DNA of 64,000 bases, from assembly GCF_048593235.1 (NCBI RefSeq), contig NC_133623.1, forward strand, positions 14,934,211-14,998,210. Direction: 5' to 3'. Below, piece by piece: positions 8,901 through 62,731 of this stretch (position 1 is its first letter; each line of letters begins with the position of its first letter). Origin of the DNA: Sminthopsis crassicaudata (taxonomy: Eukaryota). The notes beneath the pieces are model-generated. The model was given only the letters and a program-made list of their open reading frames with translations, was not told where the DNA came from and searched no databases. The translations under genes were made by a program, and so were the position numbers.

Positions 8901-9108
8901 TTTTTTTGTTTTTGTTTTTGTTTTTGTTTTTGTTTGTTTGTTTGTTTGTTTGTTTTTTTTACCCCATAGCCTTTTTTGGCAAGGCATTTGGGTTAAGTAG
9001 CTTGCCCAGAGATATACAGCTTTGAAATTTTAAGTGACTGAGGCTGGATTTGAACTCAGTTCCTCCTGACTTCAGTGCTCTATCTACTACTAAGCCATTT
9101 AGCTGCCC
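8901..9108 (-). mobile_element. WSINE1-like tRNA-derived marsupial SINE with (TTTG)n/(TTTTTG)n tail
   Basis: Antisense head 'ggatttgaactcagttcctcctgacttcag...ccatttagctgccc', core 'gggttaagtagcttgcccag', T-rich repeat tail at 8901-8959. Confidence 0.8.
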
Positions 9109-9109
9109 T

Positions 9110-9310
9110 CTTGATTCCCTTTAAATCCTAGTGCCTTCCTTCTAGTGATTATCTCTAAGTGAGCCTGTTTATTTTGTTTTTACAGAGTTGTTTTCATGTT
9201 GTCTCTCCAGGGAGAGTCTGGACTGTCTTTTTCTTTGTATCCCCAGTGCTTATCAGTGCCTGACAGCTAATAAATGCTTAATAAATGCTTGTTGACTGAC
9301 TGACTGACTT
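9110..9310 (+). mobile_element. L2 3' end
   Basis: 'tttgtatccccagtgctt...aatgcttaataaatgcttgttgactgactgactgac' is the typical L2 terminus. Confidence 0.7.
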
Positions 9311-19739: not shown

Positions 19740-20390
19740 CAGAAGTATTTTATTTAATGGTGCACTGAGTATCATTGTGGATAAAGAGTGATAGATGAAG
19801 TGACAAAGTCTCTGTCCTTGAGGATCTTGTATTCTAATGGAGAAGAAAATCTAAATAAGTAAATATACCTACAAAATATATAAGTTGAATTCCAAGTTGT
19901 TTTGGGATCTTAGGAAAGCCTTTACTTGAGTCTAGAAGAAAATCAGGAGTTCTAAGAGGCAGACTTTCATGTCTACTGAAGACCTAGGAATAAAATTCTG
20001 CAAAAGTACATAGATGAGAGTTGGGATAGTCTGCATATAAAACTGTGAGGAGATCAGTGTGTGCAACAAGGAGATTATACATAAGACTGGTATAAGAATT
20101 CTGGTAGAGTCAGAAATTTAGAAGTAGAGTGTATTATACTTGATTCTCAAGGCACTCAGAAGCTATGGGAATTCACAAATTCAGGTAGAATGCAATGGTC
20201 AGATCCAGAACTTAGAAAGGCCTTCAGATACCTTGGCAGAAGATTGGCTAGAATGACTTAAGGCAGGGAGATCAAAGAGTAGATAGCTAGAAGATCCAGT
20301 AGCCTCTGAGTCACCCACGATGGACCTCCCAATGATTGAAGAAAAGAAATAATGTCCAGGAATTCATAATTTTAAACCAAGGGACATGAA
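19740..20390 (-). mobile_element. L2 relic
   Basis: 'aaagtctctgtccttgaggatcttgtattctaatggaga' L2 3' end antisense, followed by purine-rich decayed L2. Confidence 0.55.
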
Positions 20391-20845
20391 TGTGTTGACT
20401 CCTACAGGGTTCTAAAGCTCCCTTTTCTTATGAGCAAAGTTGCTTTCCCTGGTGAACTACGTTATGTAGAGAGAAAGAACTGACATAGGAAAGACATCAC
20501 CCATTTACAATTCTGCTAAGGATATTATTTCTGGGGAGGTGTCAGTGTTTTTTATTTAAATATTCGTAGCAAAGCTTGAATCTTTCTAATGCTAGAAGAC
20601 ATATTTTGTAATGTCCTCAAATTGGTCTGAATCACTTCTCAAAGTAAAGTCAATTTTTTTTTGATTTATAGAACTATATGGCAGAGGGAAGGGGAAATAA
20701 TTAAAATCTAATAGACTTTGTTCTGTGTATTTATTAAAGATAAAAAAGAGGAGGCTACTGTAAATAAATTCAGGCAAGAGATATTGAAGACCTCTTGACT
20801 AGGGTGCTATCTGTCTTAAGTGACAGGGAGAGAACATATGCAAGA

Positions 20846-20990
20846 GATGTGGTTTTATCCAAAAAATGAGCATATAACTTTTCCTTAAAGACTTCCACTG
20901 TGGGGGAACCCATTACCTCCCAAAGCAGGCCAATACCCTTTAAGCCTACTGTGGTTACTAAGAAGTGTTTCCTGACATTAAGGACAAGCA
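20846..20990 (-). mobile_element. CR1/L3 3' fragment
   Basis: 'aagacttccactgtgggggaacccattacctcccaaagcaggcca...ttactaagaagtgtttcctgacattaag'. Confidence 0.6.
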
Positions 20991-21084
20991 TGTCTTTTAC
21001 CCACTTATCTTGGTTTTAATCCTCTGTGTCTATCACACTGTTGGTCCTCAACAAGTGTTTGGTTTATTTGATTCTAGGGATAGT

Positions 21085-21240
21085 TCAAAAGCAATATTTT
21101 TTATTGGATTTTTCTGGGGGTAGAGGAAGAGGACAGTCTGGTGATTTTTTATCACTGTAGGAATTCCCAGCATAGAAACTCTCTCCACTGAAGCAAGTCT
21201 TAGTGGGTTACCTGAGGCACTGATGTGTCCTGCCCATAGC
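21085..21240 (-). mobile_element. MdoRep1-like marsupial SINE fragment
   Basis: 'atcactgtaggaattcccagcatagaaactctctccactgaagca...ttacctgaggcactga'; recalled consensus. Confidence 0.45.
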
Positions 21241-21489
21241 CATATTGTTGGTATATATCAGAAGCAGGACTGTTGCCAAGGGTGCCCTTCCGTACCTTTA
21301 TATCTACATCTTTATTCTTTCAAAATCTGATTTCAAGATGCTAAGACACTTCAGATTGCTATCCTGTGCTCTTGAATGTACTGTTTTCAAATGTGGAATT
21401 ACTTGTATCTTTTTCTTTAGTACAAATGGAAAATACAATTATGGTTTGATCTGATTGAATACACCCAGTTCTTGAATAATTTGGGGCAG

Positions 21490-21990
21490 CTATGAACTCA
21501 GGATTGTGGACCTTCCCATCAATGAATGAAGACTTATTTCATCTGATGACAAGAGCTCCTCCATTCTTGTCTATTTCATGTGGCCCTCAGACACAATGAG
21601 TACATGAAATATATGGCTTTTCTTCAGTTATCCCTTTCTCTTGCCACATGACTAAACCATTTTCTTTATTGATCTTCGGTCACATCTCTGGTACCACTTC
21701 CACAGTGTAATTCCTTATTTATAACCTATTTCAATCTGTTTATGCTCACCATATACCTGTTTCTCTTCAGGTGATTCTCAGATTTAGTTTCTTGGAAACA
21801 ATAGTATGACTGGACTAGAAACAACGTGACTGGACTAGAAACAACGTGACTGGAAATATCATTGAAAAGATGACCCTTGGTTTCAGAGAGAAGCTAGGAA
21901 CATTTGTCATTTCCCAAGGGCAATCCAGCTAGTTTTCTTCCTCCTATTCAAATACGAGACCTGATCATTACCCATTTGCTATGTCTGTCC
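21490..21990 (-). mobile_element. RTE-clade LINE 3' fragment
   Basis: Same RTE segment as 18490-18990: 'ctcttgccacatgact', 'aaaagatgacccttggtttcagagagaagctagg', 'tcccaagggcaatccagc'. Confidence 0.7.
21807..21854. repeat. 20-bp tandem duplication (tggactagaaacaacgtgac x2 plus partial)
   Basis: Perfect copies at 21811-21830 and 21831-21850, seen directly. Confidence 0.95.
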
Positions 21991-22165
21991 AAGATTTTAC
22001 ACATACATATACTCTCACTCACACATGCTCTATAGTTTTTCTACCAAACCATTATAAGAATGTTATTATGATAATATTATAATGTGAACGATTTTTCATC
22101 TGCTTGGTTTTTCATTTTGGGGTTGTTAGACCAAATACTTTGGAGTGCTTCTGGATTTTATTTAG

Positions 22166-22220
22166 GAAACTCTGAGGTCTGATGTCATCTTCAAACAGGA
22201 GCTTGTGAGCCTCCTCCATG
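22166..22220 (+). CDS. Possible 55-bp exon (candidate B), unidentified product
   Basis: Acceptor 'ggattttatttag|', donor '|gtaggg'; open frame ETLRSDVIFKQELVSLLH(G); phase-compatible with candidates A and C. Confidence 0.18.
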
Positions 22221-23597
22221 GTAGGGAACGTAATTTGGACTTTATGCTATGTTTCTGTGATGGTGAATATCTTTGGCAAGCATATATTTTCTATGTTATA
22301 TTTTTCTTGATATGAATAGTGAAAAGGTTTTCCAACAATGCTGCACTTCTCATATCTTTGAAGGAATCTTATATAGTTTTAACATATACATGGGAGGTAC
22401 CATGTTGGTGAACAGTTTTTGAGGTAATGGCTTCCGCTGCCAAATCATGTACATTTCCACTTCCTGAAGAAGTATACTCATCTGTGGTGTTAGAGTTGAA
22501 ATGTGGCAACTTTTCCGTCCTTGAGGGTTAAAAGAGTTAATTATAAAAATACCACGTTTTAGTTATTTGTTTCTCACTTTATAGTTTCATCTTTAAGTGT
22601 CTTTGGACGATTTTGCTTAGCTGTTTCTTTCTCTAAATTTTCTTTCTTTTTTTCCTTCTGGTATTTCTTGCTATTTCATGACATAAGGAATGCATTCTCT
22701 ACGATTTATATGACGAATTTAATCTATTTTTGTCATTGTGTATAATTTCAGAGCTCACTGATGAAGAATTTATGATTTCATCAGTTTCAGGAATTCCCTT
22801 GTGGGGTTACTTCCTCTACCAATACAGAGGTCATTCATTGAATGATAAGTGCTAGGTAGTTGACTGATCCATATGTGAGTTGCTCAGGGCTACAAAGATA
22901 GTAAGTATCAGAACTGGGGTTTGATTTCCCACCTTTCTTATTCCTAGAGTAGTACTCTGATCATTATGCCAAGCCTCTGCATAATTACATACTCCAGTGT
23001 TATGATTTTGTCTTTGTAGTTAATTATTCCCTCCAAGGTTGCCTGCCCATCATGTGTGACTCTAATCTATGTCTTTCCACCGGGGAGCGACCCATGGGTA
23101 CGATAGTCCATAACTATATAACTATTTGAAAACTATTGATTTCATAAGATATATCTGTGATAATAAAGAACCCTAGCATTAACATTAAAGAACAGTCTGA
23201 CTCTGTCAGGTAGGAGTATATGTATCTTCATCTCTTCCAACAAGAAAGCCAAATATTTAGTCCAACTACAGAGCTGTGTACCACCTTAAAAACAGATCCA
23301 TTTCATCTAACATGTATTTACTGACCTGTGGTTCTTGAATGTTTAAACAGAAGCCTTGGCCATACCATTGCTTCAGGTGTTCAGCAAAACTCTCTGTGTA
23401 TATCAGCCATAGGCATCTTCCACATCCAAGTAGGGATCAGCTCTTGACTTGTACACACAATTTGCAAATGATCCAGCAGAGTATAAAGGGATGCTCAGGT
23501 TTCAGTCTTAATTAAGATTTAAGTAAATACACATTAGTCAAGTAGCCATTAGTGACTCCTTAGATAAACATTCCTATCTGCTCATTGACCCCACAAG

Positions 23598-23697
23598 GGA
23601 TCTCCTCCGAGACTCTCCACGCTTTGGCAGCTTCTCTAGCAGTTTTGTTTCTGCAGCATGAAGAAGTGGCGAATGTTCCAATTCAAGACATCCAGAG
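23598..23697 (+). CDS. Possible 100-bp exon (candidate C), unidentified product
   Basis: Open frame (G)ISSETLHALAASLAVLFLQHEEVANVPIQDIQ(R) with three CpGs; weak AAG acceptor and weak GTTGAG donor; a stronger internal acceptor lies at 23656|23657. Confidence 0.15.
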
Positions 23698-23769
23698 GTT
23701 GAGTCAATTCTTAAAAATGAAAATGCACTAAGTATGTGTACTCTTCTCTGAACAAACACAGCTCTTACC

Positions 23770-23950
23770 CTGAACTTGGAAACTGAAAGCCTAGATTCAT
23801 TTGGCGTTGGTGTGACCCTAGGCTTTTCATTTAACCCCTCTGAACATCTATTTCCTCAACTCTAAAAGGGAATGATGTTAGCATCTCCCTCCTTGGATTA
23901 TTGTGAGTCTCAAATGAAGTAATGGTTACAAAGGACTGTGCATATCTTAC
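23770..23950 (+). mobile_element. MIR core SINE
   Basis: 'gtgtgaccctaggcttttcatttaacccctctgaacatctatttcctcaactctaaaa...ggattattgtgagtctcaaatga'. Confidence 0.55.
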
Positions 23951-25477
23951 ACCAAAATGCACTGTTCTCATGGGCCTAATCATTCTCTTCTTATGTTCAA
24001 TGCTGTTCTCATTGCAATGGTTTAGGGCTAAGGTATTAGTCTAATCTTGTGCTTTTTTGCTTAATGTTTAATAGATTCCATAGTCCACCATGTTATCTGT
24101 TGTGCATGTGGGTAGTAGTAGTTGTTGTTTTTTTGGGGGGGGGTAAAGGGGGAAGGGGAATGGGTAAATGAATAAAGGATTAGTATGTAAGTTGTTCTTG
24201 AAGTTTACTGAGAACATCTTCAGAGGAACTCCAGTACCAGACAGAATGCTAAGAATGATTAGTTTATCTGTTTTTCAAATGGTTTTGATTTCTCTATATT
24301 TTGGAAGTTTGTAGTTTGGAGATTTTTATTTGGCACCCTCTCTTAAAAACATTAATCTTAAAATGTAAATGTCATTGTTTTATATAATTGTGGGCAGCAT
24401 TTTGGTTTGTACTGATATTCTAGTTCCATTAAAGTTTTTTTTTAATTTTTAAGGATATTTGGGAGTTTAAGTGTTTTATGGTAACATCCTCAGTGAATGC
24501 TAAATATCTGTAACTTGCAATGATATATAACATACTTTCTGATATTTTCTTGCAAAGGCTTAATTTATTATTAGCTTCTTTGTTGATACAGTACTGGCTA
24601 AGTTGTTGGGGATATTTTTCATAGAAGGCCTTTTGGGTTTGCTCTTGGATCTTAGATCTTGGATTTGAATTCCATAGGATTAATTTGGAAGTATCTTCAT
24701 ATTTATAACATTTGATAAGTTCAGTGTTGTATACCTGTTGTCAACCTTAACTGTATCTCTGTAAAGTGATATCTGTTCCAAAAAGAGGTCTGCATGTTTT
24801 TTGAAAAAGCTATTAATCAGGTGTTCTGAGAAATATACTAATTCTCATCTGCATTTTTGACATGGAAATATTAAGTTTTTTAAAAAAAATTTTTAAGGTT
24901 TTTACTACTATAGTAAAATGGGCCCTGTTTTTCTCAAATAGCATACAGGTTTTGTTTAGATAACTTTTAAATATTTTGTTGTTTATTTTTATTGTTCCAT
25001 AAGTGTACCTGAATTGGCATTACATGCATTTTAATTGCTATAAATGTTTTCTTCCCACTGAGCTTTGAATTCAGGATGGCAGTAAGTTTCCTGAGATTTA
25101 CAACTATAGCTTTCTTCTTGCTGACTTTATTCTCAAGGTATCTTGTCTGAAGAAGACCAAGGTATTTATAAATGATGTTCTTATCCATGGTTGTATTCGA
25201 CCTTCATATTTCAAGTTTAAACTTTTCTTTAATTTCTTTTTTTTCCCTTGGGATACAGTATGAATATTATACTTAAGGAGTCCAAATAACATTTTGATAT
25301 TACTGAGGAATGCATCAATGAGTTGAAGAAGTACTTTGATTATCATCTAAATATATCCAGTGATTGGTCATATCTTTTGTTATAAATTCTTTTTTTGACT
25401 TGGAAGCAATACTCTGTTTTGTTTTGTTTTTTTTCCAAGAGAAAAGGTAATGAATTTAGGACTCAGAAGAATCATAA

Positions 25478-25956
25478 TGTTATGGCTCAGGTTCCCTGGT
25501 GGCAGCCCTCTCTTCCTGGCCATTAGGACTGAAATAATTAGGGCTACATGACTCTGGCCTGCTCTGACATTCCAAAGAGTCATAAAACTCCAGATAGCTT
25601 ATCTCAAATGCTTGGGTATCTTCTGGCCCAGACTTCCTGATTCCTGCTGGACTACTTTCTTATCCTTCCTTCCTCCTTACCCCCAACCTGTGAGAACTGA
25701 ATTATGATATTTTCTGGAATTTCCACTTACCCAGTACTCTGCCTCCCCTTGCCTTTGTTGCCCTGATAGCTGGAGCCCTATAAAAGTCTCTGGAATTACT
25801 TGCTAGGGTCTAGATGCTTTGAGACAAGAGTCCCATCCAAGCTGGCTGGTATGTCTAGCCCAAATTCTCCACTATTAAAATATTTAAAACTTGTCTCACT
25901 TTCTCTGGCATTTTTAGTCAAGCTGCATTTTCCTTTCATTGAACTTCTTGTGACCA
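25478..25956 (+). mobile_element. Solo LTR (479 bp) inserted in the R4 relic
   Basis: TG...CA ends, perfect 5-bp TSD CATAA (25473-25477 and 25957-25961), TATAAAA at 25779-25785, ATTAAA at 25874-25879. Confidence 0.85.
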
Positions 25957-26368
25957 CATAAAAAAACCAGAAATTTTCTATATCATATTGTTTTGGAGTT
26001 CTTTCTCTTTTCTATTTATGAATTTTTAAAAAATATTTTATCTCAAATATTTTGGGAGAATGTAATATCAGGTTTGTTTGTTTGTTTGTTTGTTTTTAAT
26101 ACTCTCTTGTGGTGTAATAGATCCACATTTAGATGAGTGCTGTCAATCTCAAAAAAAAAAAGGCTTTTTGAAATCCCAGTCTAAGTATGCCAATTTCCTT
26201 TTCAAAATCATTTTTTGTTTTTGTTTTGTTTGTCAGCCATTGCATTATTAAGTATAATTTCTGGAGTCTATGTTGTATAAATGAAGATGTGCATTGACTT
26301 AAAATTCCTTAATTTGTCCCTCTTCAAATTTAAGTAGCTGATTGATTTCGTCTCTACTTTTCCCTTAA

Positions 26369-26548
26369 ATTGTATTTATTTTTTATTTTTAAAATCATTT
26401 ATTTATTTATTTATTTTTGAGGCTGGGGTTAAGTGACTTGCCCAGGGTCACACAGCTAGGAAGTGTTAAGTGTCTGAGATCAGATTTGAGCTCAGGTCCT
26501 ACTGAATTCAAGGCTGGTGCTCTATCCACTGCACCACCTAGATGCCCC
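26369..26548 (-). mobile_element. Young WSINE1-like SINE inserted in the R4 relic
   Basis: Intact head/body 'ggggcatctaggtggtgcagtggatagagcaccagcc...gtgtgaccctgggcaagtcacttaacc' on minus, A-rich tail, TSD TTTTCCCTTAA at 26358-26368 and 26549-26559. Confidence 0.92.
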
Positions 26549-27514
26549 TTTTCCCTTAATTTTTAGACTTTGGTATAAAGTTGGTTCTTATGATTGCCCA
26601 GTACTTTTCATCATTACATTGTTATGTGATTTAGTGATAATGGTACTGTGGATAAACAGTGGTAGGAAGCCCTTGCTTTTGACTGGCAAAAATTGTTGTG
26701 CTATAGTACTGGGCATCATGAATACTCCACGTACTGATGTTGTTGTTCTTTTGTATGTTAATGGTTTCCCCAATTGAATAGAGAGCATTTCCTCCAGGTG
26801 GAGTATTGGTATTCCTGATTTGTTCTGGACTATCTTGCCTTTTTGTGGGACTAGAAAAAAAAGCTGGGGAGGGCAACAACAAAATTCGTTGTTGTATGTG
26901 TCAAGGTAATCTTAATGGTTTTGAGTAAGGCCATTCTGTAATTCTATGAAATGTTTTTCTGACTTTGAGAACAGTTATATCACCCTATCAGTGGTATTTC
27001 CAGGGCTCAAACTGCCAGCATTTCTGGATTCCTGACGAGTCTTCCCATTTATTAGAATATTCTTTGGGCACACAAAGGTCACTCTGTATATCTCCTGGTT
27101 GGCATCATCATATTTTGTTGTGCCCTCCCCAGCTCTCAATTGACTGGACCTTAATGAGCCTATCATTCTTATTAATATTATGTTAATCATCATTTATTTA
27201 ATCCTGCTTAAGTGAAGTATCTTCTTAGGGGGTCTTGTCCTAATTGGACTATAGCTCAGCCTCGTGGACAAGTGATAGGAAATGCTTGTTTCAAAGGCAT
27301 AGTTTTGTCAGGGCCTGAAACTCTAAGCTTTAAAATAGGTGGTTACAACAGTAACATTCTTCTAGGGAGTACATCCTATGAACTTATAGGGCTGTGATTG
27401 AATCCTCTGGAGAATTTGTATGAAATATGTTAGTGAGGATAAGTGCTGAAAATAAGATATTATATTTTTGCTTTCAAAAAGCTTGACGGCTGTGTTCACC
27501 CTGATCTGTCATAC

Positions 27515-27581
27515 TGAGCCAATGTGGGCGTTTTCTCGGCTCATAGTTATTTGCATAGAGTTTTGCTGAGTTTATTTGCAT
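27515..27581. promoter_or_regulatory. CCAAT box plus paired octamer (ATTTGCAT) motifs
   Basis: CCAAT 27519-27523, GC-like TGGGCG 27525-27530, ATTTGCAT at 27549-27556 and 27574-27581; function inferred only. Confidence 0.3.
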
Positions 27582-27940
27582 GAAGATTCATAAGTTTGGA
27601 GCAGCTTTGAACTCCCTGAAATCATAGGACTTTTGAAGGAAGGGAAAGCTTTTACTATTCTCCTGGAGTAATAATAAGATGGCTGGGGAATCAAATTATT
27701 GTATGAATCCTTTTAGTGCTAGGGATGATAAACCTAAAAGTGAATGGAAAGAGAAATGACTTTGTTTTATGGTTACTATATTTCCGGATAGAGCTACAGT
27801 ACAATCTTGTCTCATTATGAACTGCTATAATCTAACCGAGAGGTAGAGTGCTTCAATGTGATGTGCTCATCATCAATCCTGCTCGGCTGTTTCTGAGCCT
27901 CCTCTTTAACCCATGCATCATTTGAGTTTTTTACTTCCAG

Positions 27941-27977
27941 GAACGAAAGGGCATATTTGACACATGGCCCAAGCTGA
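27941..27977 (+). CDS. Possible terminal coding exon (candidate D)
   Basis: Strong acceptor 'ctttaac...tttgagttttttacttccag|' with a branch-like TTAAC; the frame continuing candidate C reads (R)NERAYLTHGPS*. Confidence 0.15.
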
Positions 27978-28394
27978 ACTCTCATTGATTTTACTCAGAG
28001 CTTCTTTTGTTTCTAAATGTAGTGAGGGCAGATTATACAAATGCTGTCCAAAGCACTGTAAGACTTCACTTTCTTTTTTAATCAAGAACATTTTCTCTTA
28101 ATTATTCATATTACACTATTCATGTCTAATTCATATTCAATCATGAAAAAGAAGTGAAAAATGAGAGACTGCTTTGTTAGGTGCTCAAAGTGTCTCTCTC
28201 ATATCCTCGTCGCCAATATTAAATAGACAATGGCCTCTGTGATTGTTAAGTGCACTGAACCTACCTTGGCTGATAATGGACATGTGGAACCTAAGAGTTA
28301 GCCTGAATGTTTCTGTTTCTCCAATAGTTAAGTAGGAAAAAGGATATGAAACAGCACTTTTAAAGCTAAGAAATGGTAACTATAAAGCAGCCTA

Positions 28395-29050
28395 TCAAAA
28401 AAGTTCCAAACTATTAATAATAAGAGAAATACAAATTAAACCAACTCTGAGTCTCTTTGTCATGCTCATTAAATTGGCAGTAATGGTCCAAGATGACAAG
28501 AGTTGGAGTTGGAAGAGTTAAGGGAAGACAGCATATTAACTCTTTGTGGTGTCGTGAGTTGCCCCATTTGCAGTAAGACTAAACTCCTTTATACCAAAAT
28601 ATTTATAGCACATTTTATGGTAGCTAACCATTTGAAACAAAGAAGACATCCATAGTTTAGGAAATGGCTAAACAGATGGCATTATGCAAATAAAGTATAA
28701 TAGTTATGCTCTAGGAAAAGATGAATATGAGGAATTTAGAGCAATTGCAGAATACTTGAATGAACTGATACAGAGTGACATAAGCAGAACTGAAAGAAAA
28801 ATATACTCAATAACTGCAAGGATGCAAGTGAAAACACTAAAAACATGAAATAAGATTAAATTGCAAAAATTCAAGTTTGGCTTCTGAATGAAATACACCT
28901 CTCTTCCCAGTGATGGATCAAATATGATAGTTGCTGAATGTTGTAGAAAAGAAAAAGTGTAATCCCTGTGACCACAGGTTTTGCTTCCTCTTTTTTTTTT
29001 TAAAGAGTTATCTAAGTAAGAGAGACTATATTTGGAAAATGATTGTAATG
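28395..29050 (+). mobile_element. Old L1 ORF2 C-terminus/3' UTR fragment
   Basis: 'taataagagaaatacaaattaaaccaactctgag', 'aaaatatttatagcac', 'gaaatggctaaacag...ggcattatgcaaat', 'gaactgatacagagtga...agcagaac'. Confidence 0.7.
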
Positions 29051-31511
29051 TAAAAATCAAGAAATTCTATTTAGAATGATTCTTTTTTGTGGACTAGAAA
29101 GTTCTCCTCTGAGACTTTGTTTTTGGTAGAGAAGTTGGTGAGGTGTAAGTGGAAAAAAAAAGTATTTCCAGTCTTATCTGTTTGTCTTTCAAAGGAAAAG
29201 TTAACCAATGCCATCTTTCCAAATTTTAACATCATATAGAAATGGTACCATTTGAAGGATCATGGATTTGCCTCTTCTTATTTAGGGCTTATATCTAATA
29301 AAAGTAGTTTTATCTGAATTTAGCAGTAGCCTTTGCCAAACCATTTTAAAGGATGTCACTGTATGTGTTATAAGTAGTCATGAATGTGTTTTGAAGTCCA
29401 CTTGGGGATTGTTAGCGAAGTGTGTTATAGGTGTGAAATTATGATATTGACTATGCGTAGTGTTTTATAGATTCACATTAGGCAAATATTCCCATCAGTT
29501 CAAGGAGTGTAGCAGAACTGAGGTTAGATGAAGAAAAGAATTTGCATAGTCTAATGTACCTGGAGGCAGGATTGAGTTCTTTGTTTTAATTAAAACAACA
29601 ATTAATGCACAATAGATTTTTTATGCTACATGATTTGACTGCTTGGCTTAATTAGGTAGGAAATTCTGTTTCACTCCACACACACTTTGCTTAAACAATG
29701 GAATAGTTGATGTTTTGTGAAAAGATCTCTTTCCTGCTCTTGACTATTCCTAGACAGATGTATCTTGAGGCAACTTCCCCAATCTATTTTTTTTTTAATT
29801 TGGTGCCTCAAAATAATAGATAGAATGGACTTACCTATAGGTAGAGTAAATGGACATCCACATGGTGTGAATTTAGAGATGGCAGGATATCTCTTTACCT
29901 CTGTTGCTTAAAATCTAACCATTTGTTTCTTTGTGTTTTCTTTGGCATTCTTCCCTTCTTTCTGTATGCTCCTGGGAAAGGTAGCACATTAAGTCTCTCA
30001 CATAGGAATGGCAACATTTGTAGAATAAGAGATATGTCCTTATGGTAACTGAAAAAAATACTGCAGTCTAGGAGCCCTGTGGCCTGGCAGAAGGAGGAAA
30101 TGCTGAAAGGGGGCAGAAGGGCACAGAGCAGGGAGGTGTAGGGGTCATTGAAGAGAAACTTCCCAGACTTCCTAATTTAGCCAAGGGCTAGCCCTGGGAA
30201 TAGATGAATTTAACAAGATGTTTTGCATATTCTTAATATTCAAAAAGTTCACTTTGTTCACCTGGGAGTCTGGCAGTCTGGGTTCTTTATTCAGCTTTGT
30301 AACTGACTTCTAAATGACCATGGCCAAGAAAGCTAATTCCTTTGACATATGGATGGTAATGTTTATGAATACCCTCAATTTTTTTTGAGAAATAGAGTAG
30401 TATTTTGAAGATGTGTTTTGAGCTCCTAAGTTGAAAGAGCCATTAAAATATAAAATGATCTTTTCATAAATATCAAAAATGAGTTGTATGAAATTCATCA
30501 TAAACAAGCTACAAATTGCATGCCTTGTGGCTACAAGGCCACAAGTCATACGCAAAACCTTAGCTTTTTATTAAGCAATGGTTACTAGATTGTTTATAAT
30601 AATGAAATACAAGCAAAAATAACCAAAAAAGATGGATAAATGGATTTTTCCGTGGGAATATATTTTTTAAAATTAGCGAAGGATAGTCTGGAAAGATAAA
30701 AGTAGAAGAGTATATGACTAAAGGCAATAATATTATATAAAATTTGGTGGATTTAACATTGTTGGATTACCCCTTGAAGTTTGAAAGAGGTGGTCTTAGG
30801 CCAAAAATAAAGTAGCACCACATTAAAAAATGTTGTTGAGAATTATGGTTTCCAAAATGGTTCATATATATTCATGAATGATCAGTCTGTTAGGGGGTAT
30901 TGATGGCATTGAGCCTAACTGTGGGATATGTTTGGATTTTTTGGACTTGACCTCTAGATTCCATGAGAGAGAGCTCTGCATAAGAAGAAGCCAGAAGAGG
31001 GATCTGAGCTGAAGGAGGAGGAGAAAGCATTTTTAAAGTGATTTAGAGGACTTTGGAATTGTGAATAAAGTCAGAAATTTAATTGGTTCTGAGTAAGTGA
31101 AACTGGAGGAAGATGTGAGAAGTTGTAAAAGGAAAAGGAAAGGTCTTGAACTTATAGGGGATAAGGACTTGAGAAGATGGAGAAGGAGGAGAAGGAGGAT
31201 CAAGAGGTGAATGACCTGAAGATAAGAAAAAGAAGTAGCTGAAATAGAAGGAGGAAGACTTTAAAAAGAGAAGAAAAATATGAAATCAAGAAGGTAGTTG
31301 ATAAGATAAAAATAAGAAAACTCAGGTATATAAGATAATAGACTAATGTGAGAACATAAAAGTGGGAATGATTGCTAATGTTTTTAGCTCCCAAAGAAAA
31401 TGATCACTCTGGAATACACTCTGGAACCTTGTAAATAATTCATTCCAGAAGTTCTGTAGGGGAGCTGCTAGCAAGAATGATATGGACAAATGGTCTATTT
31501 CTAGCAAGTTC

Positions 31512-34799: not shown

Positions 34800-36150
34800 A
34801 TACAACTGAAATGACTTTATCCTGAATTATTTAAACAGGTAATTAAAAGAATTGGAAAATGGAAAACAGAAATGGCATCAATACCATCTATAATGTTTTC
34901 ATGCAGGATTTGAACTAATATAAATTAATTGTCACAATAAGGAGACCAAAAAAATAGCACAGATAGTTTCTACTCAGCAAATATCTGACTTACTTGCCAA
35001 ATGGAGAAAGCTGGATGCCAAAGGCAATGCTGGATTAGAATATAAATTCCCTTATAAAATTTTGCAGGAAACAATGACGAAAAATTATGTGCAGTAACTT
35101 TTCATAAAGCAGAGAAAATCATTTTCAGATAAAACCAGTGTAAAGAAAACTTAACAAGATGTCAATTTAAGCAGAGACATTCATAAAAATGAAAAGGACT
35201 CCAAACAGAAGAAAAATGCAAAAAAGCTCATATATAGCAAAATAAAACAAAACAAAAAACTACAGACATTTTTAACAAACGATTTTGTGTATAAAGAAGA
35301 GTACAACCACCATTTGTTGTTGCTGACTCTTTTTTAAGTCATGTCTGCTTCTTTGTGAACCCTTTGAGAGTTTTTATGGCAAAGGAACTGGAATAACTTG
35401 CCATTTCCTTCTCTAGATCATTTTACAAATAAGGAAACTGAGGCAAACACAATTAATTGACTTGTCCAGAGTCACATAGCTAGTAAGTATGTAAGACCAG
35501 ATGTGAACTCACAGAGATGAATTGTCTTGACTCCAGGCCTGGCATTCTATCCCCTGAATCACCTAGATGCCCTGAACCTCCAAAAAGTAAGTTGGCTGAC
35601 CTTTATGGCTACTCTACAATCTCTACAAAAACTTTATGAGAATCTTTATAACAAAAATGGAGGATGTCTTCAATGAGTATGTTAATAGGTAATGAGCAAA
35701 CTTTCACAAGTGATAATTAACAGTGGACCATTTCTTTAACATTACACCATAAACTAATATTATAGAGTCTGTAAGATTTCATTGTGCTTATCATTTATTG
35801 ATTATGAAAAAAACTTTTGATGCAGTACAAGAAAACATCACCATTCAGTTGTTTTGCAATCAGATGTCTCTCATCCATATTTCAATATCATTCAGAATTT
35901 CTTGGAAGATACAACCCTGTTCAATGAAGATCTGATTTAAGATGTAAAACAGAAATATATGCTTGCCAGAAGTATGCTCTTTGGAATTCAAAAGAGGAGG
36001 AGATTCAGCACAGAATGTAGGTTGAACAGGCATTCCTAATGGGTTGTGAGATCTTCCAGATGCTTCTGTCTATATGTCTATATAGCGTATTATACTGATT
36101 ATATAAAATTCCATCATTACACATAGTCTCTTTGAAAAATTCTGTGATCA
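34800..36150 (+). mobile_element. RTE-clade LINE internal fragment (linker plus RT N-terminal part), interrupted by MAR1
   Basis: Translates AKWRKLDAKGNAGLEYKFPYKIL (~34998-35065) and FIDYEK/FDAVQEN (~35795-35835), matching recalled RTE motifs. Confidence 0.8.
35313..35574 (-). mobile_element. MAR1-like SINE
   Basis: Antisense head 'ctccaggcctggcattctatcc...cacctagatgccc', core 'aaggaaactgaggcaaac', RTE-derived tail 'ttgccatttccttctctag'; 8-bp TSD AACCACCA / AACCTCCA. Confidence 0.8.
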
Positions 36151-39650: not shown

Positions 39651-42600
39651 TTTTATTTTTTATTATTAAAGCTTTTTATTTACAAGATATATACATGAGT
39701 GATTTTTCAGCATTGACCATGCAAAACCTTCTGTTCCAACTTTTCCCATCCTTCCCCCCACTCCCTCCCCCAGATGGCAGGTAGACCAATGCATGCTAAA
39801 TATGTTAAAGTATAAGTTAAATACAATATATGTATGCATATCCATACAGTTATTTTGCTGCACAGGAAAATTTGGACTTAAAAATAAGGTAAAATTACCC
39901 TGACAAGGAAATCAAAAATGCAAGTGAACAAAAACAGAGGGATTGGGAATGCTATGTTGTGGTTCACATTCATTTCCCAGAGTTCTTTTGCTGGGTATAG
40001 CTGGTTCTCTTCATTATTAAACAAATGGAACTGATTTTCTTCATCTCATTGTTTGAAGAGAGCCATGTCCATCAGAATTGATCATCATATAGTTTTATTG
40101 TTGAAGTATATAATGATCTCCTGGTCCTGCTCATTTCACTCAGCATCAGTTCATGAAAGTCTCTCCAGGCCTTTCTGAAATCATCCTGCTGGTCATTTCT
40201 TACAGAACAATAATATTCCATAACATTCATATACCACAATTTATTCAGCCATTCTCCAATTGATGGACATCCATTCAATTTCCAGTTTCTAGCCACTACA
40301 AAAACATGTGAAATTATTAGTTATGTCTATAATTTGCTGTTTCACCCATTCATTCTTTAGGATGAGATAATTTAGTTTCCAATTACTTTTTGGTCTATTT
40401 ACCCCTTGCTTTTTGTTGATTGCATTGTGATCTGAAAAGAATGCATTTCCTATTTCTGCATTTGAATTTGAAGTCTTTATGTCCTAATATATGGTCAGTT
40501 TTTGTATAGGTTCCATGAACTGCTGAGAAGAAAGTGTACTCCCTCTGTCTCCATTCAATTTTCCAAAAAAAATCTATCATACCTAACTTTTCTAATATTC
40601 TATTTACCTCTTTAATTTCTTTCTTATTTGTTTTATTGTTTGATTTATCTAATTCTGAGAATGCAAGGTTGAGATCTCTCACTACTATAGTTTTGCTGTC
40701 TATTTCTTCTTGCAACTCTCTTAACTTCTCCTTTAGGAAGTTAGATGCTATACCACTTAGTGCATATATATTTAGTATTGATATTGCTTCATTGTCTATG
40801 CTACCCTTTAGCAAGATATGGTTTTCTTCCTTATCTCTTTTAATTAGATCAATTTTTGCTTTTGCTTGATCTGAGATAAAGATGGTTACCTCTGCTTTTT
40901 TGACTTCACCTGAAGTATAATAGATTCTGCTCCATCCTTTTACCTTTACTCTATATGTATCATCCTGCTTTAAATATTTTCTGTAAACAACATATTGTAG
41001 AATTCTGGCTTTTGATTCAGTCTTCTATCTGCCTCCGCTTTATGGGAGAGTTCATCCCATTCACATTTATGATTAAAACTACTAATTCTGTATTTCCAAC
41101 CATCTTATTATCCCCAGATTATGCTTTTCTTTTTCTTTCTCTCCTTACCCCTCTCCCTAGTATTAAACTTTTGTGTACCACTTGTCTCACACAGCTCTCC
41201 CTCTTTTGAATCCCTCCCACCTGCTTTGAGTCCCTTTCCTTTTCCCTTTCTTGTACCTTTCCCTTATTACTCTTTTCCTTTTCCCTTTTCCTCTCCCACT
41301 TTTTAATGAGGTGAGAGAAGTTTCCCTCTAAACTAAATATGTCTAATATTTTCTCTTTGAACCAAATCTGATGAGAATAAGATTCACATAATGTTCCTCC
41401 TCTTCTCTAAATTCTCTCAGATATGATGGGTTTCCTTTGCCTCTTCGTGGGATGTAATTTCTCTCTTTTTTTGCCCTTTTCCCTTTTCCTTATACTATTC
41501 CCTTTCCATTTTACTTCCCTTTTTTTGTATTATAGCAGTAAAATCAAATTATACACATGCTCTTTATGTATGTCCATAACAGAAATACAGTTCTCAAGAG
41601 TTCTTTTTATCTTTTATGCTTCTCTTGAGTCCTATATTTTGAGGTCAATTTTTTTGTTTAGCTCCGGTTTTTTCATTAGGAATAAATGGAATTCACCTGT
41701 TTCATTGAATGTCCATCTTCTTCCCTGGAAGAAAATGCTCAGCGTAGCTGGGTAGTTCATTCTTGGCTGCATTCCCAGTTCTTTTGTCTTCTGGAATATC
41801 AGATTCCAGGCCCTTTGATCCTTTAATGTGGAAGCAGCTAGATCCTGAGTAATCCTTATTGTGGCTCCTCAGTATTTAAATTGTTTTTTCTGGCTGCTTG
41901 TAATATTTTTTACTTAGTCTGATAGTTCTGAAATTTAGCCATAACATTCCTTGGAGCTTTTATTTTGGGGTCTCTTTCAGAAGGTGTTTGATAAATTCTT
42001 TCAATGCCTATTTTACCTTCTGATTCTCTTACATCTGGGAAGTTCTCTTTGATGATTAAATAAATAAAATAAAATAGTGTCTAGGCTCTTTTTTTCATCA
42101 TAATTTTCAGGAAGTCCAATAATCTTCAGATTATCTCTCCTATATCTATTTTCCATGTCTGTTATTTTTCCAAGTAGATATTTAAAAATTTTTTCTATTT
42201 TTTCAGTTTTTGGTTTTGCTTGACTGATTCTTGATGTCTCAACGAATCATTCATTTCTATTTGTTAAGTTCTGATTTTTAATGAGTTATTTTCTCCATTA
42301 ACTTTTTTTTTTACTTCTTTTTGTATATGTCCAATTGAGTTTTTAAATGAGTTGTTTTGCTCTATGGAACTTTTTTTCCATTTCACTTTTTTTTTTATTG
42401 AGTTATTTTCTTTTTCAAATTCACAAATCCTACTTTCCTGGGAGTTCGTTATCTCTTCCAATTTACAAATTCTGTTTCCCTGGGAGTCCTTTAGCTTTTC
42501 CAATTCACATTTCAGAAAGTTGTTTTCTTTTTCCACTTTATAATATTTTTCTTTTAATGAGTTATGTGCCTTTTTCATACTCTCTTGCAGAGCTTCTCCC

Positions 42601-45896: not shown

Positions 45897-46432
45897 GTTT
45901 TTATTATTATTATAGCTTTTTATTTACAAGATATATGCATGGGTAATTTTTCAGCACTGAAAATTGTAAAACCCCTTGTTCCAAATTTTCCCCTCCTTCC
46001 CCCCCCATCCCCTCCCCAGATGACAGGTAGACCAATACATGTCAAATATGTCAAAGTATATGTTAAGTGCAATATATGTATACATATCCATACAGTTATT
46101 TTGTTGCATAAGAAGAATTGGACTTTGAAATAATGTACAATTAACCTGTGAAGGAAATCAAAAATGTAAGTGGACAAAAACAGAGGGATTAGAAATACTA
46201 TGTAGTGGTTCACACTCATTTCTCAGAGTTCTTTCACTGGGTATAGCTGGTTCTCTTCATTATTGAAGAAATGGAGCTGATTTGGTTCATCTCATTGTTG
46301 AAGAGAGCTATGTCCATCAGAATTGATCATCATATAGTATTGTTGTTGAAGTGTATAATGATCTCCTGGTCCTGCTCATTTCACTAATTATCAGTTCATG
46401 TAAGTCTCTCCAGGCCTTTCTGAAACCAGAGC
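45897..46432 (-). mobile_element. Young 5'-truncated L1 3' end
   Basis: Same 3' end as 37692-38310 and 39651-40305; TSD ATATTGGT(+T run) at 45889-45896 and 46433-46440. Confidence 0.9.
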
Positions 46433-47499: not shown

Positions 47500-48600
47500 T
47501 TTTCAAGTCTTTATGGTATAGAAAACACCATATTAATATCTGGGGGTAATGCAAATTTTGGATAAGATAATCTTTGCTCTACAATCCAGTGGGAGCAGAG
47601 GAGATAAAACACAAATATATATAGTTAGATGTTAAATTATAATGAATTATTTAATGAAGTACATGTAAATTCTAAGGGAGAAGGAAATAATGTCTACTCT
47701 TGTATAAAAGATAGTAATGTGAGATAAGTTTGGAACAATAAGCAAGCACTTAAATATGGAGAACCTTGAATGCCAGGCAGAATAGCTTTTGTGTAGTGAA
47801 CAGTTTTCTGGCAGTAGTACAAAGGACAGTTAATATATGGGTAAAACTGGAAAGATTTGTTATGGGGCTATTGCAATCATGAATTGGAAAGCTTAGATTC
47901 AAGTCCTGACTGTGACTCATCCTGGCTAGGTGACCCTGGACAAGTCACTTGTTTCAGGGCTCTAGGCAAGTCTCTAAGATGATTTGTTGCAAAGATGATA
48001 TGAATGTGCATGGGGAGGAGGAGTTTCCATATCCAGGGGTGTTCCCTATCCTAGTGAAAGCATCTCCCTTATGGTGATGAAAGCTTATAGAAGGTCAGTT
48101 ACAGTGGGAGTACAGAAGAAGAAAAGAGTATTAGAGATGTTCCCAAGAGGAAAATCAATAATAATGGATTGGATTTGAGAGGTCAGAAAGAGAGAAGAGT
48201 CAAAGTTAGAATTGTAAGGTTTGAACGCAAAAGGCAAGTGAACGAGGGTGCCCTAGAAAGAAACAATAAAAGCCAAAAAAGGAACAATTTTTGAGGGAAA
48301 ATTACAAGCTCAGTTTGGAACATATTGAGTTTGAGCTCCCAATGGGACATCTAATCTACATAGAGATGTCCTGGAGGCAATTGAAGAAGTCAGTCTGGAA
48401 CTCAGAAGTGAAGTCAGAGGGGAGATATAGATTTTTAAGACAGCTGCATAAAGTTGATAGTTGAAGCAATTGCTGTGAATGCAATCAATAAATCAACAAA
48501 TTTCATTCAGCTCCTTCTTGGTGCCATGCCCTGTGCTAGCTGTTAGTCATGTACAAAGTATAAAGAATGAAACAATCTTTAGTTGCAAAGATCTGAACAA
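47500..48600 (-). mobile_element. L2 relics (interrupted)
   Basis: 'gaaccttgaatgccaggcag', 'tcagtttggaacatattgagtttgag...gagatgtcctggaggcaattg', and an L2 3' end near 48490-48600. Confidence 0.55.
47880..48065 (+). mobile_element. MdoRep1-like SINE
   Basis: 'gtgaccctggacaagtcactt...ctctaggcaagtctctaagat...ggaggagtttccatatccagggg...ctagtgaaa'. Confidence 0.5.
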
Positions 48601-48744: not shown

Positions 48745-49258
48745 AAAATAATAATACATTCTTCTTTTCCAAAATACATGCAAAGATAGTTTTCAATATT
48801 CATCCTTACAAAACCTTGTGTTCCAAATTTTCTCCCTCCCTCCCAGCTTCTCTCTCCCCTAGACACCAAGTATTTCAGTATAGGTTAAACATGTGCTGTT
48901 CTTGTAAATATATTTCCACTTTTATCATGCTGCCCAAGAAAAATCATATCAAAAGGGAAAAAAGAATAAGAAAAAAAAAAACAAGCAAGCAAACAACAAT
49001 AGCAACAAAATCAACAAGTTTTAAATATTATGTCGTGATCCACACTCAATCCCCAGAGTCCTCTCTCTGGATACAGATAGCTCTCTCCATCCCAAGTCTA
49101 CTGGAACTGCCCTGAATCAGCTCATTGTTGAAAAGAGTCAAGTCCATCACAGTTGACCATCACATAATCTTGCTGTTGCCATGTACAATGATCTCCTGGT
49201 TCTGCACACTTCACTGAGCATCAGTTCATGTAAGTCTCTCCAGGCCTCTCTGAAGTAA
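48745..49258 (-). mobile_element. 5'-truncated L1 3' end (different subfamily)
   Basis: 'aaaccttgtgttccaaattttctccctccct', 'gatccacactcaatccccagagtcctctctctgg', 'catcagttcatgtaagtctctccaggcctctctgaa'. Confidence 0.85.
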
Positions 49259-56499: not shown

Positions 56500-56645
56500 G
56501 ACCAAGTTAAATCCATTAGAAACCAGTAAGTACTTAGTAATCATGCACTTGAAGAAACTATATTAGGAACTAGTGATACAAAAGCAAAATGAAAAATAAT
56601 GTCTGTCCTCAAGGAGCTTTTATTTTCCTGGAGACATACCATGAA

Positions 56646-56686
<41 letters not shown>

Positions 56687-57560
56687 ACACTCACATACAT
56701 CTATTTGATAGATATTCATTGTCCTTTCAGGAGGAGGGTGAGGAAATTAAGAACTAAAGAAATGAAGACAGGTATAAAGTGAGCCGTGGAAGAAGCTCTG
56801 GATTTGAAAAGACAGAGATGAGGAGGGAATGCATTCTGCATATGAGTGGTTGCTTGTGCAAAGGCATGCAGATTGCAGATGGAGTGCTAAGTTTAAAAAA
56901 AGCAACAAAGCGAGTAGGCCTGTTAAGTTCAAACATCTCACACACCAAGGGGAGTAATATGCAGTAAATCTGGACAGATAGGCTCTACGCAGATTGTGAA
57001 AGGCTTTAAATGCTAAAGGAGAAGCTTGTATTTTATCTTAGAGGCAACAGTAAGGCACTAAAGGTGAATGAGCTGGAGGGATGCGGGACATGGTCTGAGT
57101 GCTTAAGAAAGACTGTTGCCATCTGAAGAGGATAGATTGGGAATGAGAAAATGGAAAGTTTAAGTCCCTTTACAAGGCTGTTGCACTAGTCTAGGTAAGA
57201 AATAATGAGGGGCTGAAGGAAGGTAGTAGTCATATACATGGAAAAAAAAGAAGAATGGAAGAGGAATTGTGGACATAGGATCATTAAAATTGGCTCAGAG
57301 GGGGATTTAAGGGAAAGGAAACATTAAATTTATCTCCATGTTTGTGAACTGAAATAGCTGGAACAATGATGACACCCTTAATGGGAACAGGAAAATGGGA
57401 AAAAGAGGTATACTCAGTGGGGCAAGAGAATGAGTCCATTTTAGTCATGTTGAACTTGTGAAGGCAACAGGGTAACTAGTTGGAGGGGACCTCCAGGAAG
57501 GTAGTGATGTGATTCTAAAGCTAAGAAGAGAAACCAGAGCTGGATATATAAGTCTGGAAG
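56500..57560 (-). mobile_element. L2 relic containing an (AC)n microsatellite (56648-56684)
   Basis: 'tgtctgtcctcaaggagctttt', 'attgtgaaaggctttaaatgctaaagg...gcttgtattttatcttagaggcaac', 'gagtccattttagtcatgttgaacttg'. Confidence 0.7.
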
Positions 57561-61800: not shown

Positions 61801-62731
61801 TTGCTGTTTGCTGAGGTAGATTATAAAGGAGATTTAACATTTCTTCTTTTTGTTATGAATTTTTATGCTCTCACACATGGTCATTTTTTGTAAATGTGCT
61901 ATGCAAATGTGGGAAATAACTATATTTGTAATAATTTCTATTCATTAACTACCAAAGATCTATCATATTTAATCTAATATTCTGTAAAGATGTTTTACTA
62001 ATTTCATTATTGTTAGATTTCTATTTGCCTGAAAGAAGTATCTTGAATTTCCCAGTAATCATTTTTTTAATGTCAACATCTCTCTTTATATAGTTCAGTT
62101 AGATTTTCTTTTAAGCAATTATAATCTGTACTTTTCAGAGCATATGAGTAATTTAATATTAATCAATGAAAAATATATAAGCAAAAAGGATGATGTGATC
62201 ATATATGAAGAGTAAAAGCTCATCAGTGAATAGCCTTTTCACTTGATTGGGATTCTCAGAATGTTGGAAAAAAAAAAGGAAGTTTTATAATATGTTGGAT
62301 GGATCCCTGTGGCCTATATATGGAAGAACATGAATAAAAGTCCTATAGAAGTACAGGCAAGGGTGGATTATGATCTGTATCACTAGAGAGAATATATACA
62401 TTGGTGAAATCTCACAGCTATTTGCATAAAATATTTGTGCATTTATAAAATTAATCCAGGTAGAATTAGAATAGATACAGATTAGAATAAATGTTTCTAT
62501 TATCTCTAATAAACATCTGACATATAACATCTCTGGGGAATTAATACAAATCCAAAAGATCTTCTAACAGATACATGTCCAAAATAATACAGTTTTCAAA
62601 AAAAGAAATACTATTTGAAACATTTTTTAAAATAACTAATAAGCAAAGGAACATAAGTTTTGCTATTTCTGGTTTGTTTGTGTTTTTTTTTTTGGTTGAA
62701 ATATTTATTAATGGTAACAGGGATGTTCATT

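Follow-up and report, generated by a model that had tools for sequence, protein, structure and literature searches.

Which kind of retrotransposon left the decayed reverse transcriptase (RT)-like sequence near the middle of a 64,000-nucleotide window of the Sminthopsis crassicaudata genome (NC_133623.1, positions 14,934,211 to 14,998,210), and how much of that element can still be read? An earlier reading of the bare letters, hereafter the original prediction, had placed a fossil of the R4/Dong clade of long interspersed nuclear elements (LINEs) at positions 24170-26800 of the window, with about 2 kb covering RT motifs 1-7 and with a restriction-like endonuclease (RLE) instead of the apurinic/apyrimidinic (AP) endonuclease of APE-type LINEs. 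All of the peptides that it quoted are present on the minus strand of 24170-26900, spread across three frames and broken by many stops. We find that 24194-26361 (minus strand) is very probably one dead, heavily decayed copy of a non-long-terminal-repeat (non-LTR) retrotransposon of Dong/R4 type. The assignment to an RLE-bearing rather than an APE-type element held up, the sole credible matches being Dong/R4-like insect proteins; the predicted layout of the upstream part did not.

To find relatives, we searched a library of 1.84 billion representative proteins with phmmer, using as query the stop-free piece 24970-25203 (minus strand), which contains YKYLGLLQ and the thumb. Only three matches were returned in total. 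The best credible one (E=7.1e-5) was P0002, a 1139-amino-acid 'uncharacterized protein' of the weevil Sitophilus oryzae (XP_030765588), followed by P0003 (E=6.7e-4), a 196-amino-acid fragment from the butterfly Parnassius apollo. We rejected the remaining match, the 7153-amino-acid repeat protein P0001 (E=2e-30), as a repeat-summing artefact made of 11 weak repeated stretches. No credible protein of an APE-type LINE appeared at E<=0.001 in this search. P0002 has a single Pfam domain, RVT_1, at residues 487-749, and BLASTP aligned the query piece to its residues 737-796 with 43% identity over 60 amino acids; these residues form the end of the RT (motif 7) and the thumb, as expected for the piece. 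Searching the window with P0002 by tblastn gave collinear minus-strand high-scoring pairs with a sum E of 3.5e-12, and a further one in the linker (P0002 905-936, E=0.004).

We then collected 120 relatives and built a profile hidden Markov model from the 76 with a length of 1100-1270 amino acids; a second, broader profile also takes in metagenomic relatives. When hmmsearch compared the family profile with every six-frame piece of the whole window, two matches were significant, both of them at the fossil (E=2e-9 and 9e-4), and the next-best match (E=0.18) also fell in the fossil region. DNA was compared with the profile by frameshift-aware local alignment, computed by dynamic programming, with dinucleotide shuffles as controls. 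The minus strand of 23900-27200 scored 125.7 bits, or 149 bits when long profile deletions were allowed. The 100 shuffles gave 22±3 bits and peaked at 33; reversing the sequence gave 29 and the plus strand 17, and no other 3.3-kb stretch of the window exceeded 38 bits.

In the core of the fossil, 24194-25423 (minus strand), 369 codons aligned with 34% identity to the family consensus. Of 33 highly conserved columns, 23 are intact, YLDD among them. Damage to the core comprises 4 in-frame stops, 4 frameshifts, 5 DNA insertions and 120 deleted profile positions. The RT core at 24990-25423 (minus strand), running from the end of motif 4 through motifs 5-7 to the thumb, scored 94.8 bits against 13.7±2.0 in shuffles (z=41). 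Motif 5 reads NHWIYLDD, motif 6 IKMLFGLLK and motif 7 YKYLGLLQ; the thumb is ILNSKLSGKKTFIAI, and three frameshifts interrupt the run. With motifs 4b-7 and the thumb together at 24990-25423, the domain is an RT of the non-LTR type. It is joined by the thumb-knuckle linker (24552-24990, minus strand; profile 831-962), which includes VDNRYTTLNLSN and KEANNK and scored 36.6 bits against 13.4±2.0 (0 of 200 shuffles, z=11.6), with its GGRGL segment (26 positions) deleted and 91 nucleotides of DNA inserted at 24779-24869. As the original prediction had proposed, HWIYLDD, IKMLFGLLK, YKYLGLLQ, LTAILNSKLSGKKTFIAI, VDNRYTTLNLSN and KEANNKL are collinear, and in the family profile they stand far above chance.

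After the RT comes a CCHC zinc knuckle. It had been thought deleted; instead, LCKKISESMLYIIASYRYLAFTE at 24489-24557 (minus strand) is a decayed knuckle (18.2 bits against 10.9±1.7, 0 of 300 shuffles) that aligns with kCkekeEtieHiisgCkvlaqte, keeping the second Cys and having Tyr in place of both the His and the last Cys. What is missing are the 41 profile positions directly before it (959-999). The C terminus of the fossil is a remnant of a PD-(D/E)XK RLE at 24194-24476 (minus strand; profile 1055-1161), which scored 20.1 bits against 13.7±1.8 (1 of 300 shuffles). Its peptides include KL*WN*NISTNQNAAHN, RVPN-KNLQ, KLPKY and IILSI-LSGTGVP. Of the catalytic residues, PD has disappeared and the D that follows has become N; all 4 in-frame stops of the core lie here. 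Taken jointly, knuckle and RLE scored 32.5 bits against 16.3±2.7 (0 of 300, z=6, at a stop penalty of -1). The C-terminal peptides first picked out by eye (KL*WN..AHN, VPNKNLQ and EIKTI*K..ILSGTGVP) were likewise collinear and confirmed by the family profile.

Given this homology, the class of the element can be read from its nearest protein family. RVT_1 is the sole domain of the relatives, in which no AP endonuclease was found (Exo_endo_phos in 0 of 41 scanned; none in the precomputed Pfam annotation), and the family invariants are C-x2-C..H..C (C978, C981, H990, C995) followed by a PD..D..K C terminus. Compared by sequence with solved structures, P0002 matched R2 proteins best (E=1.7e-30). 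Its AlphaFold model (predicted local distance difference test, pLDDT, 83.6) aligned with R2 structures at template modelling (TM) scores of 0.53-0.74 over about 870-1130 alignment columns, ahead of L1 ORF2p and at 17-19% identity. Among the 38 metagenomic loci with a protein match to the C terminus and enough 3' flank, about half have (TAA/AAT/ATA)n starting 160-260 nucleotides after the protein match. R4/Dong elements encode an RT and a restriction-enzyme-like (REL) endonuclease; their insertion sites are ribosomal DNA (rDNA) or microsatellites, Dong targets (TAA)n, and the R4/Dong-like elements compiled in the literature include those of Sitophilus oryzae and of the lepidopterans Bombyx and Spodoptera (PMC7998251). 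We therefore file the fossil under R4/Dong on the strength of that work and of a family with RVT_1 as its only domain, CCHC plus PD..D..K motifs, an R2-like model and (TAA)n ends. The N terminus of the fossil itself is absent, so that the element would have been without an AP endonuclease is judged from the sequences of these relatives.

Members of the family differ at their 3' ends and, apparently, in their targets. Other repeats follow the protein match in L012, L015, L028, L056, L067, L010 and L017, namely (AG)n, (TA)n, (GAT)n, (ACA)n or poly(A), and this variety suggests target switching within the family. One metagenomic relative (L047:4169-4491; 29% identity to P0002) sits on a contig whose end, ..GGTTTCCGTAGGTGAACCTGCGGAAGGATCATTA, we take to be the conserved 3' end of 18S rRNA, which suggests an rDNA-associated family member. 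In P0002, residues 92-147 are modelled with confidence as three short helices around a conserved KWT..N...MR.YY motif; Pfam made no detection in this N-terminal domain. The modelled fold fits the divergent Myb/SANT-like N-terminal domain that has been reported for R4/Dong elements (PMC7998251).

Upstream of the core the alignment took a different course from the one predicted. Adjoining the core, 25424-25622 (minus strand) is probably RT motif 3b-4 (profile 610-677), reading KIPKHLR*AIWSFMTLWNV and then ..HQG..DS.LSPKF. The assignment of LLSPKF to RT4 thus finds some weak support, which varies with the stop penalty: z is 4.0-5.9 at -1 (0-2 of 300 shuffles) and 1.0-1.7 at -3. There follows a GC-richer block at 25623-25899 that could not be aligned to the family and that occupies the expected place of RT motifs 0-3 (181 profile positions); the RT0-3 profile scored 11.1 bits against 13.2±1.9 and gave no signal over 25600-25930. 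Because the profile alignment continues, if weakly supported, to about 25622, the excision of 25478-25961 proposed earlier is misplaced, and the unalignable block is 25623-25899.

Beyond this block, 25900-26361 (minus strand) corresponds to the pre-RT N-terminal region (profile 299-428). It scored 30.2 bits against 16.2±2.5 with the broader profile and 27.4 against 16.8±2.6 with the first (0 of 300 shuffles each), and 0 of 150 shuffles reached its score when the whole profile served as search space. The region reads TKQKQKMILKRKLAY, then TPKQYDIENFW/FFMWSQEVQ*KENAA*LK, the P0002 counterpart of the latter being LPTEEEIENYWSSIWSQPVNHNTDSTWI; the match is clearest where TPKQYDIENFW/FFMWSQEV faces LPTEEEIENYWSSIWSQPV of P0002. 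A (GTTT)6 microsatellite lies within the region at 26072-26095.

Farther out, the stretch with GETINIQK..LPTTVY (26585-26830, minus strand) is uncertain. It had been read as RT1-2, for which its DNA scored 13.2 bits against 14.0±2.1 (z=-0.4). As linker (profile 921-988) it scored better, at 20.1 against 13.9±2.0 (1 of 300 shuffles) and 18.7 against 14.0±1.7 (3 of 300), with the shared pattern W.K..L.G ... W ... Q.Q...T..Y..Y; against the whole profile it was not significant (15 of 100 shuffles). As profile 921-988 overlaps the linker of the main fossil, the stretch, if real, would be a second fragment. DNA alignment of 26566-26950 with 24150-24760 gave no signal of a second copy, and the N-terminal third of the family gave none in 26566-27900 or 26600-29500. 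Verified coding-derived sequence amounts to about 1.2 kb, to which the pre-RT region adds about 0.46 kb and the weakly supported RT3b-4 about 0.2 kb, in place of the 2 kb covering RT1-7.

Several points weigh against a Dong/R4 copy of this extent. RT3b-4 at 25424-25622 is convincing only under a light stop penalty, support for the RLE is moderate (p about 0.003 or less), and no (TAA)n survives at the 3' end of the fossil itself. Pfam found no RT in ten stop-free pieces; a word-index protein search with the best piece gave no match, and phmmer searches of the PDB with three fossil pieces gave none or chance matches only, so homology needed other proof. The clade placement rests on features of the nearest family and not on a labelled RT tree of R4, Dong, Rex6, Hero and NeSL. 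Many sub-tests were run, and p-values near 0.01 are to be discounted. An ESM Atlas comparison was uninformative, and Rfam had no match in 20000-31000.

Could the layout first proposed nevertheless be correct throughout, with RT1-3 at 26640-26800 and 26155-26190 and RT4 at 25449-25466, all too decayed for an insect-biased profile? We hold this to be improbable. The RT3 block does slightly better than its shuffles (14.7 against 11.5±1.8), the RT4 motif at 25425-25513 is found in both alignment paths, and motif spacing would be roughly right if about 480 nucleotides were excised. However, 19 of 300 shuffles reach the score of LAYLDWDFKKPF, the peptide read as RT3, which aligns better as pre-RT sequence, overlapping the motif 'akrlrrY'; and the significant pre-RT match of 25900-26361 is incompatible with RT3 at 26155-26190. 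RT1-2 at 26566-26950 falls below its controls, as given above, in DNA that fits the linker better, and the RT0-4 profile found nothing above chance upstream of 25423 (z=-0.3 to 1.4) except the probable run to 25622. Attractive by-eye matches of equal quality arise here by chance in overlapping frames, as with EDTQAF against DYkKAF at 25606-25623, and we therefore trusted only shuffle-controlled scores.

The same evidence bears on the class of the element. That it belongs to another RLE-bearing clade (Hero, NeSL, CRE or R2) is a slimmer prospect still. All RLE clades share the order of RT, CCHC and RLE, Hero relics are reported in human (PMC9004415) and exist in tetrapod genomes, and R4/Dong was assigned from features of the nearest family; yet the best matches are insect elements from a family ending in (TAA)n, a Dong hallmark (PMC7998251), R2 entries of the PDB went unmatched by the fossil pieces tried at thresholds as loose as E<=10, and P0002 is itself only 17-19% identical to the R2 structures. 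It is scarcely credible that the source was an APE-type LINE (RTE, CR1, L2 or L1) with a chance similarity of its RT to the R4 family. APE-type LINEs dominate marsupial genomes, and further weak RT-like matches occur elsewhere in the window. The whole-library search, however, returned no credible APE-type protein at its threshold, in keeping with the expectation that the best protein matches would not be RTE, CR1 or L2, and the homology extends past the RT into linker, knuckle and RLE, which APE-type LINEs are without.

As a Dong/R4 copy, the fossil would derive from an element encoding a single protein, in which an N-terminal DNA-binding region and an RT are followed by a linker carrying a CCHC knuckle and, at the C terminus, by a PD-(D/E)XK endonuclease. 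If its family is a guide, the endonuclease would have nicked the target, usually a microsatellite or rDNA, and the RT would have copied the element RNA into the nick, a process called target-primed reverse transcription. The surviving parts are the pre-RT region, RT motifs (3b)4-7, the thumb, the linker, the knuckle and most of the endonuclease. RT motifs 0-3 appear to have dropped out and the catalytic residues of the endonuclease have been lost; stops, frameshifts and deletions have accumulated throughout, and a short interspersed nuclear element (SINE) has inserted itself. The fossil is without function as a gene.

Short words of its sequence bear on the age of the insertion. All 31-mers of the core were found in sequencing runs of one species, and 11-15% of them in four other species (roughly 6-7% divergence). 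Since paralogues of a repeat this old should have hardly any 31-mers in common, the shared copies are taken as orthologous. On these shared 31-mers, the insertion probably predates the splits from the four other species.

The nested SINE, with its A/T-rich tail, lies at 26375-26565 (minus strand). It is flanked by a target-site duplication, CTTTTCCCTTAA.TT, at 26357-26374 and 26548-26565 (16 of 18 positions identical), and further copies of the same SINE occur in the window at 8990-9121, 35453-35572 and 47920-47950. The earlier excision of 26369-26559 was thus essentially correct. The SINE is tRNA-headed and CORE/MIR-like, its copy in the fossil has a (TATT)n-like tail, and we presume it to be of a kind typical of marsupials.

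At the opposite end of the fossil, 24105-24165 (minus strand) is a C/T-rich low-complexity run followed by A7 and (AAC)3(TAC)3 (at about 24105-24130), roughly at the position due for the final 30 codons of the open reading frame (ORF). This sequence may be a tail or a target microsatellite in decay, or may have nothing to do with the element. Just downstream of the point where the fossil fades out, at about 23830-23900 (minus strand), the sequence '..gttgaggaaatagatgttcagaggggttaaatgaaaagcctagggtcacacc' looks by eye like the 3' part of a MIR. Elsewhere in the window, weak plus-strand matches to the R4 profile (E 0.8-11) lie at 40035-40175, 46247-46384, 49116-49214, 56593-56754 and 61859-61945. 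All five fall on one RT segment (profile 602-643) and are probably RT relics from LINE families other than this one.

How unusual is such a copy? The original prediction regarded it as a rare relic, but Dong-R4 is routinely annotated in marsupials, and RepeatMasker tables for the Antechinus genome list 12,719 Dong-R4 copies amounting to 4.9 Mb (PMC9631953). In human, Mam_R4 is a LINE relic with a restriction-like endonuclease, besides newly found Hero relics (PMC9004415), and Rex6/Dong has been surveyed across vertebrates (PMC4350176). Our literature search for Dong-R4 in named marsupials returned nothing on Dong-R4. Like the Mam_R4 or 'LINE/Dong-R4' repeats, which are ancient RLE-type LINE relics in mammalian genomes, the fossil is an ordinary representative of a repeat class that is already known and annotated as a matter of routine.

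Comparison with active or better-preserved systems places its losses. Insect Dong/R4-like elements (P0002 and its lepidopteran relatives) share the domain order of the fossil, with motifs collinear from the pre-RT region to the RLE. The insect copies have intact ORFs of 1100-1400 amino acids, and (TAA)n stands at the end of many of the metagenomic relatives, whereas the fossil is dead and has neither RT0-3, nor the N-terminal third, nor a recognisable (TAA)n. R2 proteins (PDB 9nl2, 9nl3, 9dou, 8gh6 and 8ibw) have the same RT, linker and RLE architecture and the same target-primed reverse transcription as the P0002 family, but differ in having N-terminal zinc fingers and rDNA specificity, at the low identity to P0002 already given.

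The large Antechinus count hints at a marsupial-specific subfamily. We think it unlikely, though not negligibly so, that the copy belongs to a marsupial-specific Dong/R4 subfamily still active after the eutherian split; the locus could likewise preserve two fragments, 26585-26830 and 24194-26361, left by successive site-directed insertions into a single target.

The more useful result is a lesson of method for reading such DNA: in AT-rich, decayed sequence, motif chains assembled by eye were right where the signal is strong but misled over RT1-3 and over the supposedly deleted knuckle, and shuffle-controlled, frameshift-aware profile alignment tells sound motifs from unsound ones. For the family, the map of a fairly long copy is now corrected, from the pre-RT region through RT4-7, thumb, linker and knuckle to the RLE. 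If true, a marsupial-specific copy would extend the mammalian R4 consensus into the pre-RT region. Beyond annotation the significance is small, and consists in confirming that relics of RLE-type LINEs in a marsupial genome are still legible at the protein level.

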